Shown here: in pieces, positions 28,201 to 55,394 of the stretch | Layout of the letters: each line of letters begins with the position of its first letter | How positions within the stretch are numbered: position 1 is the stretch's first letter | Assembly (NCBI GenBank): GCA_024704765.1 | Contig: JAKMXF010000321.1 | Span: 62,001-126,000, forward strand | Reading direction: 5' to 3' | DNA from: Oopsacas minuta | Taxonomy: Eukaryota > Animalia > Porifera | Length of the DNA: 64,000 nt | Program-made: the position numbers and the translations under genes | The notes under the pieces: generated by a model | Databases searched by the model: none | What the model saw: only the letters and a program-made list of their open reading frames with translations | Told to the model about the DNA's origin: nothing

Positions 28201-31200
28201 GCTCCACTACCTGGTCTCGATTGGCTTCTGGTACCAAATTGACCTCTGTCAAGAAGGCTTTACCTACCGCGTGGAGTGCCTGTTTAGGCCAAGGCATGAA
28301 CCAATCAATGACAGTACAATTTACGAGGCCTGGGAAGTTCCTGCATCTTCTCCGGAGGTTCTCACCAGCTGGAGACATAGCTAGGACTATATGGAGGTTG
28401 TTTGACGATTTCTGTATGAAGTAGGTCCAACAGGATTCCTTGGTCTGTGGTAATCCCAAGTTCTTAACCTCGTTACGGACCTACAGGATTGGAATGTGTG
28501 TATATAAATGCATAAATGGGAATACTATATAATGTCAAAGCTTCTAATCTAATCTAAACATTGCTTTTATCACCATAAAGGTGTGATATTATACACATTA
28601 GAATAATTCTATATCTGAGGTGCATATCTACACCCAAATGTACTAATATATTTCTCAGGACACCGCCTACGAACGGACGGATGCGCTACATCGTCCATGC
28701 CAATATGGACAGTTCCAATTTGAAGGTACAATCTTATCCTCACCTGTCCAATGAGAGCCTCCTTTTCATCATCAGGGAAGAGGGCAGGCACCATACCGGA
28801 AGTAAGCATATTATTAATTAATTCCAGAAAGCCTTCCTGAGCGACGTGCGCATCTGTAAACAAAAATACCACTTTCTTATTCTCACTACCCAGCATTCTA
28901 TACAGGCTCTTAAGGTCCTCTCTGAATTCTGTCTCTCCGTAACCTCTACTAAGTTGTATCTCAAATACCTAACATTCAATTAGTCAACATGGTAACTAAG
29001 GTGTGAAATAATAAGTAAATAACAACAAACCTCACATCCAGCAGCAAATGCAGCTAATCTAGTCAAACTCTGTTTACCTGATCCACCAACACCTACTAGT
29101 AAGCAATGTCCTAAATTCATCCTAACTACTCTGTGTATCCTTGTCAGATGGTCGAGAGCATCATCAAATAGCACCAGGTTCATGGGGGAGTGATCCGCAC
29201 TGTATTCCTCCATGATCTCCTGGAATAGAGCCTTAGCAACGTCATAGTCCTACAAATATGTGTATACATATACAATTTGTAGTGTAGTGTAACATACAAT
29301 AAACTCCTATTATATCTAAGCTGAAGGGACGGCGATCATTACTCCGGTATAACTGATGGAATATGTTACTGTAACGGTTTGGGACCATATTTGTACAAAT
29401 TCACACTTGGATACAAGCGGGTAATTCTATATATCTGTGTTTGATATAACGGGAGTTGACTTTAGAATATTCAAAAGACTGCTTTGTGAGGTCTTTGGTA
29501 GCAGTGCCAAGGGGAGGAGGACTAAAGGGGGCCCTCAAGCACGCCCCTTCCAATCCTGGATCCGCCATTGAGTGCTGAAGTTGACACAACAACAAGAGAG
29601 ACAAATACAAACACATACAAACACATACAAACAATCAATTACCTGAATATTCTCATAAATGCGTGGTTTATCAGGCTGCAGGGATGTTCTATAATCTCCA
29701 AACAATATCGGTTCAATACAAACATACTCTGCATAATCCTTAAAGTTCTCTTCCAGTAATTCAAAGATTTTCCCCTTCACGTATTCCTTATCTTTCTCAT
29801 TGGTAAGTCTATCTGAAAATATTCTCAAACATTCATTGCGCCAGACTCTCACCAACTCTTTCGGCGCGTTAAAGCGATCGGGTATAGTTAGATAAAGCCC
29901 GTGGTAGATACGTGACAAGTCTCTTAAGTTGAATATATAATGAAACTTTGAAGGTGTTGGTGGAAGTTCCATTACAATTTGGTCATATAACTTCATTGTT
30001 ACTTTTGTCAATATAGTTGATAATTCTTGTACCTCACTCTTAAATGGGGCAAGATGTCCAATGAGGAGAGAGTTATAAATATGGAACAATGAATCATTTG
30101 AAGGGAAGGTAACGTGAAAAACAGAAAACAGTGAAATGAATCTCGGATCAACCTCGTTTCGACCGCCACCAGCTTTCCCCATAGCAGCTAGATACCTGAT
30201 GTCCTTAAAATGTTTATAATTAAGATCTTTCCCTCGATCATACATCCCACCTCTCTCCAGCAATAACTTGAGTATAGCAATAGGCTGTTGTGTGCCATAC
30301 CTGTCAACTTGTGGCATATTCATGTCATCAATGAATACCAGAAGTTTCTTACCAATAGGAGGCCCATATGTGTCCTTAGTTCTCTTTTCAACATTCGTTT
30401 CTAATGTTCGCTGTACGTCCATGGAAGAAGTTCTCGAGGAGAAGTTTAAATTCAGTATCATGTATTTTTCAGTGTCGAGCGAGCGAAGATAGTTGGCAAT
30501 TGTCGCCGTTTTTGAAGTTCCAGTTTCACCAACCAGGACAACAGGACGATTAATTTTAAGCATAAGCTGTAGCAGCCATGTGATTCGTTGAGTGTCAATA
30601 GTTGGTACTAAAATCTCTGTGAACCTCTTGGTACAATCATGGACGTATTCGGGGACCAATTGGGACCATGGTACCCATAATTTCTGTTTAGAATCGTAAT
30701 AATATTGGTAGAGGGTATCGAGAGCAGTTGGGAACTCTCCAGCCTGCGCTGAAGCCCCTGAACTAGGATTTGAAGGTAGATTTGATAATCTTTTGCACAT
30801 TTGGTCAAATTTTATCCTCCCATCTTCCAACAAAACTGCTCCAACCGACCAATAGAGTGCCTGTAGAAAATAAGCCTCCAATTCTTCTGGACTCAATCCG
30901 AGACCTTCATCGTTTTCTACAGTTTTCTCATCCATATCCGGTAACAACGCGTCTAGAAGGTGTGATAATTGTGTCACCATGTTCAGGTTTGTGATAGGAG
31001 CAATAGTAGGAAGTTTCTCTTCGGCTCTACCATCTACAAAGCCTTCCAGAATCATTGAAATATTTGCAGGGACATATTTCTCAAAGAGTGTAATCAAAGT
31101 TGTCCTATCTTCTTTCCCAGAACGAGCATTCACCCATTTCTTCCAAAATGGGAGATATCCCAGATCTTTAGGGTCAACATACACCATGCCACACCTCGAC

Positions 31201-48640: not shown

Positions 48641-49719
48641 GCCAGGTTTGTAACTAAGCAACCATTAAAGGAATGTACAAGTAGCTAATAAATACAGTAG
48701 ACCGGTTAATCGGGATAACACCATTATCCCGATTAATCCAGTCAAAATGCCCTGCTGGTCCCGATGTGACACTATTAAGAGGAGTCTACTGTATGTAAAT
48801 AGCAACACCTTAATAATACATACGTATAAGGGTAAGGGCCGGAATTACCCTGGAGTGGCCCAAAGGCTGGATCATACAAGTGGCCCGAAACATGGTCGAC
48901 ATTGGTTGGTGCCCTCCCAAATTTCAAATATTTTACAAACTAGAAAGTGCCATATTTTACAGTGCAGGGGTCTCTGCCAATATTGGGTTGGAATAAATGA
49001 CTGACCTGAAGTGGCATGATGGCTAATAAGAGGTCAAGTAGATAAAGAGCAAGGATAGTGACCGATCTAATAGGGTTATACTTGCTCCCTTCCCTTGGAA
49101 AGTAAACAAACAAACAAATAAATAAATAAATAAATAAATATATCCGGATTAGTAATTAAGAAAAATGATTAAAGATAACCCATTAATAATTATTATCATT
49201 TACGGAGCCAACTTTGTCCAAGAGGAGACCTATTGGGGATCAAATATTGGTCCAAAATATACCCAAATTGGCCAACGCAACATAACGACGTAGCAACGTA
49301 ACGCAGCATTTACGTGTAATGTATCCCGTAATAGCCACATATTATAGTACCTCAAGTTTGAATTTTTTAGAAATGTGTCGTTTTATTTGTCAAATAAGCA
49401 ATGATTTGGTGAACAAACCACTTTTGACACTCAGTGGACTTTAAATTAATACAACTTAACGGCTACAGGGTGTGAATTAATGATGGGGGTTCATTCACCA
49501 TATATGATTACTTATTTCTTGTCAAATAGAGAGATACATTTCTAGAATATTTCTCCTTTAAATAGGAGAGATAAATAACTAGGCAGTACTTCGTATCTTC
49601 TTTGCCATTCAACTACGAGCAGCCAACTACTTCGGAGATACCATTGGCATACATTGAAATGGAAACGGCTAATAAACCATTCATTAGCGCATGTGAATTT
49701 GATGCCCTGGAGATGATTC

Positions 49720-49853
49720 GTGTTGTGTTGTGTCGCGGTGTTGTGTCGAGTTGTGTCGCGGTGGTGTGTCGAGTTGTGTCGCGGTGGTGTGTCGAGTTGT
49801 GTCGCGGTGGTGTGTCGAGTTGTATCGCGGTGTTGTGTCGAGTTGTGTCGCGG
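49720..49853. repeat. Minisatellite, 23-bp higher-order unit (GTGTCGAGTT + GTGTCGCGGT[G/T]GT), about 5.5 copies
   Basis: Tandem array read directly; no unique spacers. Confidence 0.95.
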
Positions 49854-49856
49854 AAG

Positions 49857-50138
49857 CGAAATCGAATACGAATACGAATACGAATACGAATCGACTACGA
49901 ATACGAATCGAATACGAATACGAATACGAATCGAATCCGAATACGAATCGAATCGACTACGAATACGAATCGAATACGAATCGAATCGAATACGAATCGA
50001 ATACGAATCGAATCGAATACGAATCGAATCGACTACGAATACGAATCGAATACGAATCGAATCGAATACGAATCGAATACGAATCGAATACGAATCGAAT
50101 CCGAATACGAATCGAATACGAAATACGAATCGAATACG
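49857..50138. repeat. Mixed CGAAT/CGAATA (5-6 bp) satellite
   Basis: Continuous ..TACGAATCGAATACGAATCGAA.. array that abuts the minisatellite. Confidence 0.95.
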
Positions 50139-50468
50139 TTAAACGAAACGCACGTAACACTAGTTGGTATTCATCATCCATGGTCAGTACCCTCTCTTAG
50201 CCTGATCAACTATTTGAGGATTATAGATCTTGGGTGGCGGATACTAACCAGTAACACCTTCAGTTATAGGTGGATAAGTTCGATGGGTCTTTCAGTTTAT
50301 AAGTGGGGGGTGGACTGTTGGGTAAGCCATGTATATACAATTAACGAAGCGAGAGCCTAGGTAACTGTAATGGTGACAAGGGTAACGTATAGGTACAACA
50401 GCTAGGAATGTGCAGCCCAATTATGGGTTGCATGCTCCCCTTGTCACTCTCCAATCGTATAGGCTCGC

Positions 50469-50540
50469 GGTTGGGAAAGGTACAGAGTGTGTCCCAAGTG
50501 CACTCACAGCGAAATCGCTGTATCCCCTGAGGGACCAACC
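50469..50540 (+). ncRNA. Twister-ribozyme-like RNA motif (P1 type with P5 stem), possibly degenerate
   Basis: P1 GGTTGG/CCAACC; GAA at the cleavage position; P2 AGG/CCT; T1 AC/GT; P4 GAGTGT/GCACTC around loop TCCCAAGT; P5 ACAGCG/CGCTGT; catalytic GA followed by GGG pairing with the loop CCC (T2). Confidence 0.62.
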
Positions 50541-50956
50541 AATAATCCAATTTACAATATACCTCGTATCGCAGCTCTTAAATATAACAAGAACTATAAA
50601 TCTTGAAATCTCCCTTATAGTGTCTCTATAACACCTAACACCTATATGACGTCACAAAGTACTCCGCTGTCCTCTCTAATTGTTCACTTACTAGTGGACA
50701 ATTAGAGAGGACCCAATGTATACACTGATTCAATCTTTAATTAATAATGATACTAACTATGGAACTCGGAAGAGAAGTAAACTCACCTGTATGTGATTAT
50801 ATGTTATGTCCCTCGTCCAAAGGTGCTAAAATATGAATAATCACCCCGGCTACTATTCTATAGATTAGGATCTCAAAAATTCACACTCGGTAACAAATAT
50901 ACAAACAAAAATAAATCACGCATTCTCAAAATATATTAAAATACCCTATTTCTTGT

Positions 50957-52009
50957 CTAAACTGGAACTAAGAAGTAGAACCGTAGATTCGTGTTAGTTC
51001 CAATTACATCAGAATATTCTGTTATAAGATCAGATTCGCTAAGTGGAACAGTTCCAAATACCATTTTAGAGAGGATCTTTTTTGCTGTCATATTTATGAT
51101 TCTAGCGTACATCTTCATTTCCTGCTTTTCATTAGATATTCCTTGGGTAGCAACCGTAAATACGTCTTGGTATGTGTCTGTAGGTGTTAGATATAGATAT
51201 TTAACAGAGCCCCACTTAGTTTCAGTTATGATTCTATAAGAAAATCTGAGTTTGGATTCGGAAAAAGTATTTGAACGAGGAAGGGGAACAATTTGATTGG
51301 TAAAAGAAATAGGGTAAGAGCCTTCAGACATGCCATGCCAGTATAGCAACTGGTCCCAAGCTTCGGAATGTAGATAAATGGGGGATACAGTATGCAAATC
51401 TTTCCCTAAGATATCCAAGTTGTTGATTGGAATGTTCGACATAATTTCGTTATCACATTTTATATCTGAACTATCAAAATTGACGGCTTGTTTCCACTTC
51501 TGGAACCAAGTGTGAGATACCACATAATTTGTCTCTCCTTCCATTGGTTCCAGTTTCAATAAGGGTGCAATTGTGTCTCTCTCATACTTCTTAGTTCTAA
51601 ATATAGTAACCTTCCCTAACTCGTTAAAACATGTATCATCGATTTCCCAATTCAGACATACTTTATCAAGTGAATATTTCTTAGTTCCATATTGAGCCAT
51701 TAAGTCCCGGATCTCCTGGGATTGTTTCGTTTGAAATTCCACCAAATTATTACTTTTCAGATTCAGTTCCACTTGCTCAAGAGTTAGTTCCAGTTTCCGT
51801 ATATCCAATTCTATAGTTTCAAGTTTGGATAAATTCAGACTTTCTGCTCTATCAATCTCCGCCAATATTTCTTCTTCCCGTTTCCCTAGCAACCGATGGA
51901 ATGTAGCTATTCTATTTTTAACATTTTGTCTAGCATCTTCAAAGCTTAAAACTGTAACCGATGGCGTCTTTAAAGCCTCAAATTCTTCACTTTCAAAACT
52001 GGATGCCAT
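50957..52009 (-). CDS. Coiled-coil + DUSP + ubiquitin-like protein without USP catalytic domain (350 aa)
   Basis: EGETNYVVSHTWFQKWK..PINNLDI..LHSEAWDQLLYWHG matches the DUSP domain of USP4/11/15. The C-terminal ~95 aa has a UBL-like pattern. No Cys-box or His-box. Single exon. Confidence 0.8.
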   Translation of the reverse strand: MASSFESEEFEALKTPSVTVLSFEDARQNVKNRIATFHRLLGKREEEILAEIDRAESLNLSKLETIELDIRKLELTLEQVELNLKSNNLVEFQTKQSQEIRDLMAQYGTKKYSLDKVCLNWEIDDTCFNELGKVTIFRTKKYERDTIAPLLKLEPMEGETNYVVSHTWFQKWKQAVNFDSSDIKCDNEIMSNIPINNLDILGKDLHTVSPIYLHSEAWDQLLYWHGMSEGSYPISFTNQIVPLPRSNTFSESKLRFSYRIITETKWGSVKYLYLTPTDTYQDVFTVATQGISNEKQEMKMYARIINMTAKKILSKMVFGTVPLSESDLITEYSDVIGTNTNLRFYFLVPV

Positions 52010-52149
52010 AGCTAAGAGGTGTTAAACTGTCTCGTGTTATGCCACAAATAATTATAGCGACATTAAGTATTTTCTATATTAGTTATAAAATAAAACAACA
52101 AATAAATAAATACAAAAATGTTACTCAAAAAAACCCAAATATTTATACA

Positions 52150-53178
52150 TTATAACACAGCTGGAACAATAAAATAGAACCTGATATTAGTGTCAGTTCC
52201 AATTTGCTGGCTAAAATCACTGATTTCATTCACTTTTCCATAAACTTTTACCATAAAACTATTTTTCTTTCGTTTAGTCTTCCACTGAATCCTTATTGTG
52301 TCGCGACCCACTCCAATTCCCTTCATAGCAACGTTAAGTAGCTCTTGGAATGTATTGGTAGGATATAGATATATAAAGTTAACAATCCCGCGTTGTTTTC
52401 CTTGAATAATTCTATAAGAAAACCTCAGTTTCGACTTGAGAAGATGTAGAGCAAGATCAGAATTTGAGAATACAGATATGGGATATGATAGCTCAGATAA
52501 GCCATGCCAGCCTAGCAACAGTTTCCAAGCATCGGAATGTAGAGGTTTACAAGATACAGAATCCAAGTCCTTACCTTGGATCTCAATGTTGTCGATTGGA
52601 ATGTTCGACATAATTTCGTTATCACATTTTATATCTGAACTATCAAAATTGACGGCTTGTTTCCACTTCTGGAACCAAGTGTCTGATACTACATAATTCG
52701 TCTCTCCTTCCATTGGTTCCAGTTCCAACAAGGGTGCAATTGTGTCTCTCTCATACTTCTTAGTTCTAAATATAGTAACCTTCCCTAACTTGTTAAAACA
52801 TGTATCATCGATTTCCCAATTCAGACACACCTTACCAAGTGAATATTTCTTAGTTCCATAATCAGCCATTAGGTTCCGGATCTCCTGGGATTGTTTCGTC
52901 TGGAAATCTTTCAAATTATTACTTTTCAGATTTAGTTCCACTTGCTCAAGAGTTAGTTCCAGTTTCCGTATATCCAATTCTATAGTTTCAAGTTTGGATA
53001 AATTTAGACTTTCTGCTCTATCAATCTCCGCCAATATTTCTTCTTCCCGTTTCCCTAGCAACCGATGGAATGTAGCTATTCTATTTTTAACATTTTGTCT
53101 AGCATCTTCAAAACTTAAAACTGTAACCGATGACGTCTTCAAAGCCTCAAATTCTTCACTTTCAAAACTGGATGCCAT
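52150..53178 (-). CDS. Tandem paralog: coiled-coil + DUSP + UBL-like protein (342 aa)
   Basis: First ~190 aa nearly identical to the 50957-52009 product; DUSP motifs retained; C-terminus diverged. Confidence 0.8.
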   Translation of the reverse strand: MASSFESEEFEALKTSSVTVLSFEDARQNVKNRIATFHRLLGKREEEILAEIDRAESLNLSKLETIELDIRKLELTLEQVELNLKSNNLKDFQTKQSQEIRNLMADYGTKKYSLGKVCLNWEIDDTCFNKLGKVTIFRTKKYERDTIAPLLELEPMEGETNYVVSDTWFQKWKQAVNFDSSDIKCDNEIMSNIPIDNIEIQGKDLDSVSCKPLHSDAWKLLLGWHGLSELSYPISVFSNSDLALHLLKSKLRFSYRIIQGKQRGIVNFIYLYPTNTFQELLNVAMKGIGVGRDTIRIQWKTKRKKNSFMVKVYGKVNEISDFSQQIGTDTNIRFYFIVPAVL

Positions 53179-53306
53179 AGCTAAGAGGTGTTAAATGTGT
53201 ACAGGGAGAACCAGTGACCACTATTGTGACACTATCACTTCTTTAATTCTAATTAATGTAATAATGGAATTACTTAAAATCAAAATGTCAACAACAACAA
53301 AATTAT

Positions 53307-54402: not shown

Positions 54403-55394
54403 TCAATCATCAAACACCTCTCTCAAATAACTAATTCTAGAACAAAGACTGACATTATCAGGATCTCTCCTGTCTACTCTAACCTCTACATTAAACCCTA
54501 TAGGTTCATATACTAGGTTACAGTTCCGGTTCAATTTACCTCCAGCATCCTCGGTGTTTGAGGTGATCTCCTTTGGAGGAGAAATTGGTTTCACTTTGGT
54601 GTCAACTTGACACTCCCAAGCATCCACTTGTACTTTTTTAGTCTTATCGTCAAAATAAGTTTTCCTTGCTATTGTAATTGAATCATTTGCCATTCCATTC
54701 CACCCTAGCAACAGTTCAAATGCATCGGAATGCAGCAATACAAAATGTTTGTTCCTCTGAAGTCCATATTTGAGTCTGGAACCGGAAATAATCCGGGAAT
54801 TATCGATTGGTACCCGTTTAACCGGAGCGGATCGAAAACTTTTGAATAAAGATTTATGGAAATTCACTTCATCACACCAATCCCTGAACCACCTAGCTGA
54901 CACAATGTGCCATATTTCCCCAAGTTCAGGGTGTCTTGATTGAATGATACGTTGGATCATTGTCCTCTGTTCCTCACGGGACGGTAGCACATGACTAATC
55001 GTACAAACATTATTTTGACACCTTTCAAAATCAGAGTTCCATATTAAAACAACAGAATCCACTTCAATTTCTTGTACATTTTTGAGATAATTTATTTTCT
55101 TAACAATCGAATTTACAGATTTAGTATATTCTTCGTTTAAAATATTTTCTGTAAAAGTTGTCTCAACTTTTGTAAGCGCTTTTTCTAGCTCAAATATATT
55201 AGCAGAAATCTCATTTGTTTAAAGATTCTATTTTGGATTATTTCTTGAAGTTTACTTAACAATTTTTGTTCCAAATCGTATAATTGGTCGTGGAAATATG
55301 AAAATTTTGATCGTATTAGAACCTCAGCATCTGATAGGCTGCATCTCTCAATTGTGTCTGTAAATTGTGTCGGTTCAGAATATTTTGTTGCCAT
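54403..55394 (-). pseudogene. Third, older coiled-coil + DUSP paralog with two frameshifts (pseudogene or assembly indels)
   Basis: Starts MATKYSE (55394). The frame shifts near 55222 and again near 55100 into the DUSP ORF (GEIWHIVSARWFRDW..PIDNSRI..LLHSDAFELLLGWNG). The intervening frame, ANIFELEKALTKVETTFTENIL, aligns with LDIRKLELTLEQVELNLKSNNL of the intact paralogs. Confidence 0.7.

Follow-up and report, generated by a model that had tools for sequence, protein, structure and literature searches.

A candidate divergent type-P1 twister ribozyme in non-coding repeats of the glass sponge Oopsacas minuta

Described twisters and the sponge motif

Twisters are among the best-studied small ribozymes, and their catalogue rests on covariance models and descriptors. 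The type-P1 form of this self-cleaving ribozyme was reportedly described by Roth et al. in 2014 and, to our knowledge, a biological role for twisters is known in one setting alone, the 5′ processing of schistosome LINEs. By the definition in PMC5408937, a twister has the stems P1, P2, and P4, a pair of pseudoknots, and some ten bases of L1 and L4 that do not vary; it is cut immediately 5′ of a strongly conserved A, and the U ahead of that A is 'less conserved'. In a large in vitro survey all four bases were tolerated at N-1, and P0 stems on average lowered cleavage (PMC11662667). The same source gives A1, A2, and the G of GA as essential and reports A-C instead of A-A after the cleavage site as nearly inactivating; PK1 must pair, with wobbles acceptable and mismatches harmful, PK2 is less tolerant of disruption in its middle, and L2 is variable (PMC11662667). 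Twisters accept insertions ahead of the cleavage site or behind PK2, as well as changes at the broadly tolerant 3′_6 position, where an unpaired A follows GGG in the motif described below, while P0 (present in ~10% of twisters) and P5 (an uncommon auxiliary stem) are both optional (PMC11662667). Twisters of Schistosoma mansoni have the arrangement P1 / UAA / P2 / GC / ... / GUCCCAAGC / ... / GAGGG / P1 (PMC8501958). In the Perere-3/RTE elements of that species, the ribozyme forms the very 5′ end of an EN-RT LINE, and the 5′ strand of P1 comes from a target-site duplication.

Within a 64-kb window of the O. minuta genome (the whole stretch of DNA analyzed here, to which all positions refer), the 72-base stretch at 50469-50540 of the plus strand, read base for base, holds all key twister parts in canonical order, and every segment that the first-pass annotation of this DNA had listed is present where it was placed. 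All features described below lie on the plus strand. The 5′ strand of P1 (GGTTGG, 50469-50474) pairs with the 3′ strand (CCAACC, 50535-50540) and is followed by the 5′ strand of L1, G50475-A50476-A50477 (50475-50477), which corresponds to the N-A-A of twisters; with the position equated in this way, the scissile bond is predicted to lie between G50475 and A50476. The 5′ strand of P2 (AGG, 50478-50480), which pairs with its 3′ strand (CCT, 50526-50528), is separated from T1 by a single T at 50481, and U50481 may form a third pair (U-G) with G50500. The 5′ strand of T1, or PK1 (AC, 50482-50483), is complementary to G50498-U50499 in L4, which would give two Watson-Crick pairs between L2 and L4, A50482-U50499 and C50483-G50498. 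A50484 lies in L2, between the T1 strand and P4.

The P4 stem (GAGTGT/GCACTC, 50485-50490/50500-50505) encloses an L4 loop composed of G plus TCCCAAGT, that is, G-UCCCAAGU (50491-50499), and this sequence, GUCCCAAGU at 50491-99, agrees with the L4 consensus of (G)UCCCAAGC. Downstream of P4 are an auxiliary P5 hairpin (ACAGCG-AAAT-CGCTGT, 50506-50521), a linker (ATCC, 50522-50525) between P5 and P2′, and the 3′ strand of P2. These are followed by GA on the 3′ side of L1 (50529-50530), where G50529 is the predicted general base by analogy with twisters, by the T2 strand (GGG, 50531-50533), which is complementary to C50493-95 of L4 and would form the second pseudoknot (T2/PK2), and by the unpaired A at 3′_6 (50534). 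The 3′ strand of L1 reads GAGGG, comprising the predicted catalytic G, the A, and the T2 purines, as the twister class requires. The motif is of type P1, without P3 and with a P5 hairpin.

The arrangement of the sponge motif can be written as P1 / GAA / AGG / (U)AC / - / P4 / GUCCCAAGU / P4′ / P5 + 3-4 nt / CCU / GAGGG(A) / P1. It agrees with the type-P1 twister (RF03160) in its order, P1-L1-P2-L2-P4-L4-P4′-(P5)-P2′-L1-P1′, and in having N-A-A, GA then GGG, an L4 of (G)UCCCAAG-, a 2-bp T1, a CCC/GGG T2, and the optional P0 and P5. Unlike the type-P1 twister, it has G at N-1, a 3-bp P2 with an extra U, an extra A between GGG and P1′, no P3, and an unusually long P0 (~113 nt), and it matches no Rfam twister model even at E<=10. 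Compared with the S. mansoni twisters (PMC8501958), the L4 of the window motif is identical to GUCCCAAGC at 8 of 9 positions, the odd one being the compensated T1 base; specifically, the sponge T1 is A-U/C-G and theirs is G-C/C-G, a two-sided change.

Several peculiarities had been pointed out when the sequence was first annotated, and they fare differently against the published data. The compensatory T1, AC with GU here against GC/GC in the twisters of PMC8501958, stands. The G at N-1, taken as a deviation, falls within the tolerance for all four bases at that position (PMC11662667), and the supposedly extra G at the P4 loop closure is the normal first L4 base of Schistosoma twisters, GUCCCAAGC (PMC8501958). 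The unpaired A at the top of P1 is indeed present, but its position is among those that tolerate change broadly (PMC11662667).

Genomic copies, covariation, and model searches

The 61-Mb O. minuta genome was explored with a DNA search, pattern searches, and a covariance model that we built ourselves (R1). The DNA search returned six further copies, ~88% identical over >200 nt, and two loci where the similarity is confined to the 5′ half; with the pattern searches and model R1 the total rose to 23 genome matches. The window copy and the six others constitute family A (7 copies), and at least three repeat lineages besides family A carry the core, namely lineage B (C88:558010 and C322:299648), lineage C (C333:295371), and lineage D (C332:1024344). 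The initial suggestion that the motif is part of a repeat is borne out by the seven family-A copies and these other lineages. According to BLAST among the loci, the repeat lineages have only the ~80-nt core in common. About ten copies, recovered by patterns and model R1, are visibly decayed, their L4 being broken, their GAGGG replaced by AAGGG or GAGGC, or their P5 lost. In metagenomic and viral collections, the core pattern gave 70 and 1 matches, respectively, none of which passes R1, and no homolog from outside O. minuta was found there.

A structural descriptor was used that combined TCCCAA of L4 in a loop closed by a P4 stem of ≥4 bp, T1 complementarity, AA, a P2 of 3-4 bp, GAGGG, and a 5-bp P1. 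Across both strands of the 64-kb window it matched one site only, and in 20 Mb of Markov-1 random sequence, with 7,396 TCCCAA anchors, it had no match; given one match in the window and none at random, the motif is not a product of chance. The strict descriptor is passed by eight genomic copies, and the exact core pattern has 10 matches in the genome in the forward direction versus 0 with the pattern read backwards. Additional candidates were examined and set aside. The other TCCCAAGY sites of the window (28454, 51354, and 54614) are not twisters, and neither are a 'CCCAAGT...CTGAGGG' family of >25 copies and the matches on C328, which are transposon or coding sequence. A pattern for canonical twisters with a GC T1 had two chance matches in the genome, the better of which is without P1.

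Intact copies of lineages A to C share an invariant string, G-GAA-AGG-UAC-N-[P4]-G-UCCCAAGU-G-[P4′]-[P5]-N3-4-CCU-GAGGG-A-C, and CCTGAGGGAC, on the P2′/L1 3′ side, is invariant in lineages A to D. At the predicted cleavage site, lineages A, B, and C read GAA without exception, and lineage D carries A-C in place of A-A after that site. N-A-A, GA-GGG, and the L4 GUCCCAAGU do not vary among the copies that are best preserved.

P1 differs from lineage to lineage, with GGUUGG/CCAACC in A, GUGGUGG/CUACCAC in B, AAUUCG/CGAAUU in C, and UUUUCGG/CCGAAAA in D. In a model-based alignment of 18 copies, two-sided changes were present among lineages in 6 of the 7 pairs of P1, and 84% of P1 cells were paired (18 copies) versus 34-42% with the partners slid by 1-3 columns; the P1 covariation score was reached in 0 of 500 shuffles. 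The P5 hairpins are made from unrelated sequences (CAGCG/CGCUG, CAGCC/GGCUG, UGAU/AUCA, and UCCU/AGGA). Covariation analysis among the copies, proposed in the first-pass annotation as a check on the motif, was thus favorable in P1 and in the rebuilt P5. P2 is nearly invariant in intact copies, and P4 pairs are kept despite changes in lineages C and D, changes in either stem being few. Run on the full set of 18, with the decayed copies among them, RNAalifold recovered only P1. Within the O. minuta genome, T1 and T2 show no covariation, being invariant in intact copies and broken in decayed ones, and the putative T1/T2 pseudoknots draw their support from complementarity and from the twisters already published.

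The minimum free energy (MFE) fold of the window motif comprises P1, P4, and P5 (-28.8 kcal/mol, z = -3.0; RNAfold). P2, which has 3 bp only and is followed by the extra U, is absent from the MFE fold and is present by complementarity in all intact copies. P2 and T2 face competition in the MFE fold from a local CCC-UGA-GGG hairpin. The thermodynamic z-scores of lineages B and C were unremarkable.

No match was found when the whole 64-kb window was compared with 4,227 Rfam families at the gathering score, or when the Rfam twister models were run at E<=10 on 401 nt and 91 nt around the motif. The lone weak Rfam match, an L31 leader aligned to a CCUGAGGGA string, was judged meaningless. In the whole genome, RF03160 (twister-P1), RF02684 (twister-P5), and RF02681 (twister-sister) had no match; the search with the twister-P1 model that the initial annotation had suggested was therefore negative both at the locus and genome-wide. 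Of the three observations named there as counting against a twister, one was made, in that no model score was obtained, while another, a lack of genomic homologs with compensatory pairing, is clearly contradicted by the copies described above. An identity as twister-sister was set aside, with no RF02681 match in the genome or at the locus and a pseudoknot-forming L4 that favors twister proper. Because no match reached the Rfam gathering score, we class the motif as a divergent variant of the twister class and not as a member of an Rfam family.

The Rfam models may fail here because the two T1 changes are scored as two losses on conserved columns, and the lack of P3, the 16-23-nt P5, the short P2, and the lack of an A-rich 3′ L2 may contribute. 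A complete twister core can escape all Rfam twister models, and the compensated T1 swap, the short P2, and a P0/P5 layout without P3 would appear to suffice for hiding one. The practical yield is covariance model R1 together with a handful of testable sequences, and the family offers a natural test of the sequence requirements of the T1 pairs. No report of a glass-sponge twister was found in the literature, and sponges are absent from the published twister host lists examined, such that the motif would add twisters to this early-branching group of animals.

Adjoining hairpin, predicted cleavage, and competing readings

Adjoining P1, with almost no linker, is an extended P0-like hairpin of 113-114 nt (50353-50466), seen in the MFE and centroid folds of the family consensus. 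It has outer (50353-59/50460-66), middle (50373-82/50438-47), and inner (50411-19/50424-32) stems. Six copies have 1 difference in 762 sites of this hairpin, and the window copy retains the inner stem via a two-sided U-A to G-U change. Among the six family-A copies other than that of the window, the block formed by P0 and the ribozyme (~200 nt) had 1 difference in 1,224 aligned sites versus 39 in 1,649 in the flanks, a contrast of ~30-fold (Fisher p ~1e-8, although the copies are related, so that the p value overstates their independence). The family consensus has no change at any position that is sensitive in the terms of PMC11662667.

The window copy has 5 differences from the family consensus in 77 nt, no fewer than its upstream flank. 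One G is missing between P1 and GAA, at a junction reported as tolerant; G50484A changes L2, C50521T gives P5 one more A-U pair, and P1 no longer has its 2-bp outer extension. Because these changes avoid every known essential position, the window copy is probably still competent if the family is, and we put the odds that this copy itself cleaves at even.

We consider that 50469-50540 of the plus strand is a genuine but divergent type-P1 twister with an adjoining P0-like hairpin, at a probability of roughly 70%. The first-pass call of a P1-type twister, as either an active variant or a decayed copy, is in line with the architecture, the catalytic positions, both predicted pseudoknots, and the covarying stems, all as judged from sequence. 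The family probably has twister-type catalytic activity, or had it until recently.

In the mechanism that we propose, P1, P2, and P4 would stack as in solved twisters, and L4 would dock through T2 (C50493-95 with G50531-33, plus an A-A contact) and through T1 (A50482-C50483 with G50498-U50499). Docking would bring G50529, as general base, and A50476, as general acid, to the G50475/A50476 phosphodiester, leading to the cut. The upstream product would end in the P0 hairpin followed by the 5′ strand of P1, with a 2′,3′-cyclic phosphate, while the downstream product would carry a 5′-OH and comprise the ribozyme body and a ~0.47-kb tail with a subterminal hairpin. Judging by position, the motif most likely processes the transcript of its own element. 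In so doing it might either separate the P0-capped upstream part from the 3′ tail or set the 5′ end of the tail.

The strongest competitor to a twister family that is or recently was active, and one we think unlikely, is that the lineages once had an active twister and that present copies, including that of the window, no longer cleave, in which case the conservation would come from recent copying or from another constraint, such as on the P0 domain or on DNA-level signals. Many copies are visibly decayed, with damage to L4, GAGGG, or P5, no Rfam model is matched, and the divergence of the window copy from the consensus (5 differences in 77 nt) is no lower than that of its upstream flank; moreover, the families are small (7, 2, 1, and 1 copies) and 85-95% identical, which argues that they were not recently active. 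Against such decay, the six other family-A copies keep the 200-nt block nearly unchanged while their flanks diverge ~30 times faster, all known essential positions are intact in lineages A, B, and C, and the changes of the window copy are confined to outer P1, L2, P5 (where a pair is gained), and the tolerant junction.

We view as quite improbable a structured RNA or DNA element that is not catalytic and merely resembles a twister, for example a protein-binding or packaging fold. Such an element would accord with the lack of support from Rfam covariance models, with a constraint that extends into the 113-nt hairpin, and with pseudoknots that do not covary within the genome. It would, however, need to have acquired N-A-A, an L4 matching at 8 of 9 positions, GA-GGG, T1 and T2, and the three-stem layout in the right order and spacing, a combination for which the descriptor had 0 matches by chance in 20 Mb; furthermore, the invariant bases are exactly the catalytic and pseudoknot bases of twisters, while the stems vary. 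Finally, a chance resemblance within repeat DNA would agree with the window count of TCCCAAGY-type 8-mers (4, versus 3.8 expected by chance) and with the 70 metagenome matches of a looser pattern, all failing the covariance model. It is effectively refuted by the uniqueness of the descriptor, by the 10 forward versus 0 backward matches of the core pattern in the genome, and by the retention of a core with covarying stems across lineages having nothing else in common.

The repeats that carry the motif

Family A is a dispersed non-coding repeat whose window copy occupies 49273-50657 and resembles the six other loci at ~88% identity. This copy lacks both ends of the fuller, ~3-kb copies, which reach to ~-2.5 kb and ~+0.47 kb around the ribozyme motif. 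In family A the motif is preceded by the 113-nt hairpin domain; a unique stretch of ~330 bp separates this domain from the CpG-containing microsatellites, upstream of which the element continues for another 1-2 kb. In the window, this upstream part includes a 23-nt tandem repeat of 5.8 copies inside the element (49720-49853; Tandem Repeats Finder) and a (CGAATA)n/17-mer CpG-containing microsatellite (49860-50138) that is within the element and common to other family-A copies. The last position of the (CGAATA)n array, 50138, lies 331 bp ahead of the motif, in agreement with the distance of ~330 bp from a CpG satellite given in the first-pass annotation. Lineage B has the same layout with other microsatellite units (TTCGTCGT and TCTTCAAT) upstream of the motif and a short P0 hairpin, CGAACU-CUAC-AGUUCG. 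Both A and B have, ~30 nt short of the 3′ boundary, a subterminal hairpin that contains TGGAGGAC.

The ORFs that lie no more than 1.5 kb from a copy on either side belong to host genes (seipin, photolyase, eIF3g, a tyrosine kinase, and PIG-L) or are fragments of other transposons, and no RT or transposase was found beside the motif. In the window, the neighbors of the motif are DUSP-domain genes on the opposite strand. An upstream ORF of 191 aa at locus L150 was discounted, as it is an internally repetitive tandem repeat with stops in other copies and no Pfam match. No tRNA head or poly-A-like tail was found, nor was there a surplus of 3′-end copies, and at the apparent ends there is no long terminal inverted repeat, the sole similarity being the 8-nt TATAGTAT; a CTRR-type Helitron end was not seen by eye. 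Each 3-kb or 10-kb locus has one model match, as does the 64-kb window, with no second ribozyme, and no hammerhead or other Rfam RNA was found near the twister copies.

Because of this context, models of a LINE 5′ end, a SINE, or a retrozyme do not fit. The motif is internal, with no RT nearby and no 3′-end surplus, as opposed to a LINE 5′ end, the SINE reading lacks a tRNA head and a poly-A-like tail, and a retrozyme or circular-RNA unit is at odds with the single motif per locus and the lack of a direct-repeat pair. The retroelement or SINE origin offered in the initial annotation accordingly fails, given the lack of an RT, a tRNA head, a poly-A-like tail, and a 3′-end excess, and a motif that is not at the 5′ terminus.

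As in the Perere-3/RTE T-variants of S. mansoni (PMC8501958; PMC7761336), the sponge twister motif is in a repeated element with the predicted cut near its own 5′ edge, and the ribozyme body would stay on the downstream RNA after that cut. Unlike in Perere-3/RTE, P1 is wholly inside the sponge element and the motif is internal, with 1.3-2.5 kb of common, non-coding sequence upstream, ~0.47 kb downstream to the 3′ boundary, and no RT nearby. The hammerheads of Penelope-like elements and retrozymes are similar in being small ribozyme modules in the 3′ part of repeats, with stems that covary across families, but they represent another ribozyme class, and the sponge repeats have no transposase or RT ORF, a single motif per locus, and no dimeric excision unit. 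A possible release of downstream RNA from a longer co-transcript is likewise a parallel with the HDV-like ribozymes that R2, RTE, and L1Tc retrotransposons carry at their 5′ ends; however, the fold of those ribozymes is unrelated, and they are terminal whereas the sponge motif is internal. The setting in non-coding, microsatellite-bearing repeats, beside a strongly constrained hairpin, calls for a different functional explanation.

One such explanation, which we regard as speculative and rather doubtful, is that the P0 hairpin and the twister form a conserved RNA-processing cassette of ~200 nt, at the heart of undescribed non-coding mobile or domesticated elements of glass sponges. If so, the cassette could leave the RNA with a 3′ end that is capped by a hairpin and not polyadenylated (or with a defined 5′ end), as needed for element propagation or a host function, and it would represent a twister sub-type, with an A-U T1, a long P0, a P5, and no P3, whose role is unlike LINE 5′ processing.

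In DNA contigs of one sample (four runs), the depth was higher over the repeat, and variants of other copies were present.

Elements common to the two repeat lineages

Outside the ribozyme, the only sequence common to family A, the dispersed non-coding repeat to which the window copy belongs, and lineage B, a separate repeat lineage with a twister core, was a GC-rich hairpin containing TGGAGGAC at the 3′ end. This hairpin was located at L150:9270-9327 in family A, and at L055:1830-1890 and the equivalent position of L062 in lineage B, in each case approximately 30 nt before the copies part from their flanks. It may represent a common recognition signal for whatever mobilises both families. A string resembling TGGAGGAC was also present at window 29510-29545.

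Additionally, CpG-containing microsatellite or short tandem arrays were positioned 0.05-0.9 kb 5′ of the ribozyme in both, specifically at window 49720-50138 for family A and at L055:613-1446 and L062:1641-2075 for lineage B. Their unit sequences were not alike, being CGAATA and a 23-mer in family A, and TTCGTCGT and TCTTCAAT in lineage B.

The 5′ side of the ribozyme

Directly 5′ of P1, the outer stem of the candidate twister, was an extended hairpin of 113-114 nt (window 50353-50466) that was near-identical across six family A copies. In the window copy, its inner stem was still paired, via a two-sided change from U-A to G-U. The hairpin may be a very long P0, that is, the optional stem upstream of P1, or else a separate functional RNA domain.

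When the decayed ribozyme copy L075 (G000:C79:31391-31471) was compared with its relatives L072 and L076, the common sequence started at the first base of P1, while the flank 5′ of P1 was unrelated, placing a breakpoint at the 5′ edge of the ribozyme. This breakpoint was not at the predicted cleavage site.

Copy number and downstream surroundings of the window copy

Summed depth of the DNA contigs from runs X1-X4 was several-fold higher across the repeat (window 49288-50575) than in its flanks, and variants belonging to the other copies, such as an additional G following 50472, were present in these contigs. Both observations fit a multi-copy family and carry no information on RNA.

A strong inverted repeat of 15-16 bp, GTCCTCTCTAATTGT...ACAATTAGAGAGGAC (window 50669-50712), coincided exactly with the point where the family A resemblance of the window copy ends, and may be the border of another insertion. 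Approximately 110 bp 3′ of the ribozyme was a perfectly palindromic, CRE-like octamer, TGACGTCA (window 50647-50654); the remaining family A copies had CGACGTCA at this position. Further downstream, the minus strand carried a tandem pair of paralogous ORFs (window 50957-53178), 350 and 342 aa long, which matched the DUSP domain weakly. Their paralogous DNA (51148-52026 and 52326-53195) was 87% identical, and a third DUSP ORF was located at window 54403-55062.
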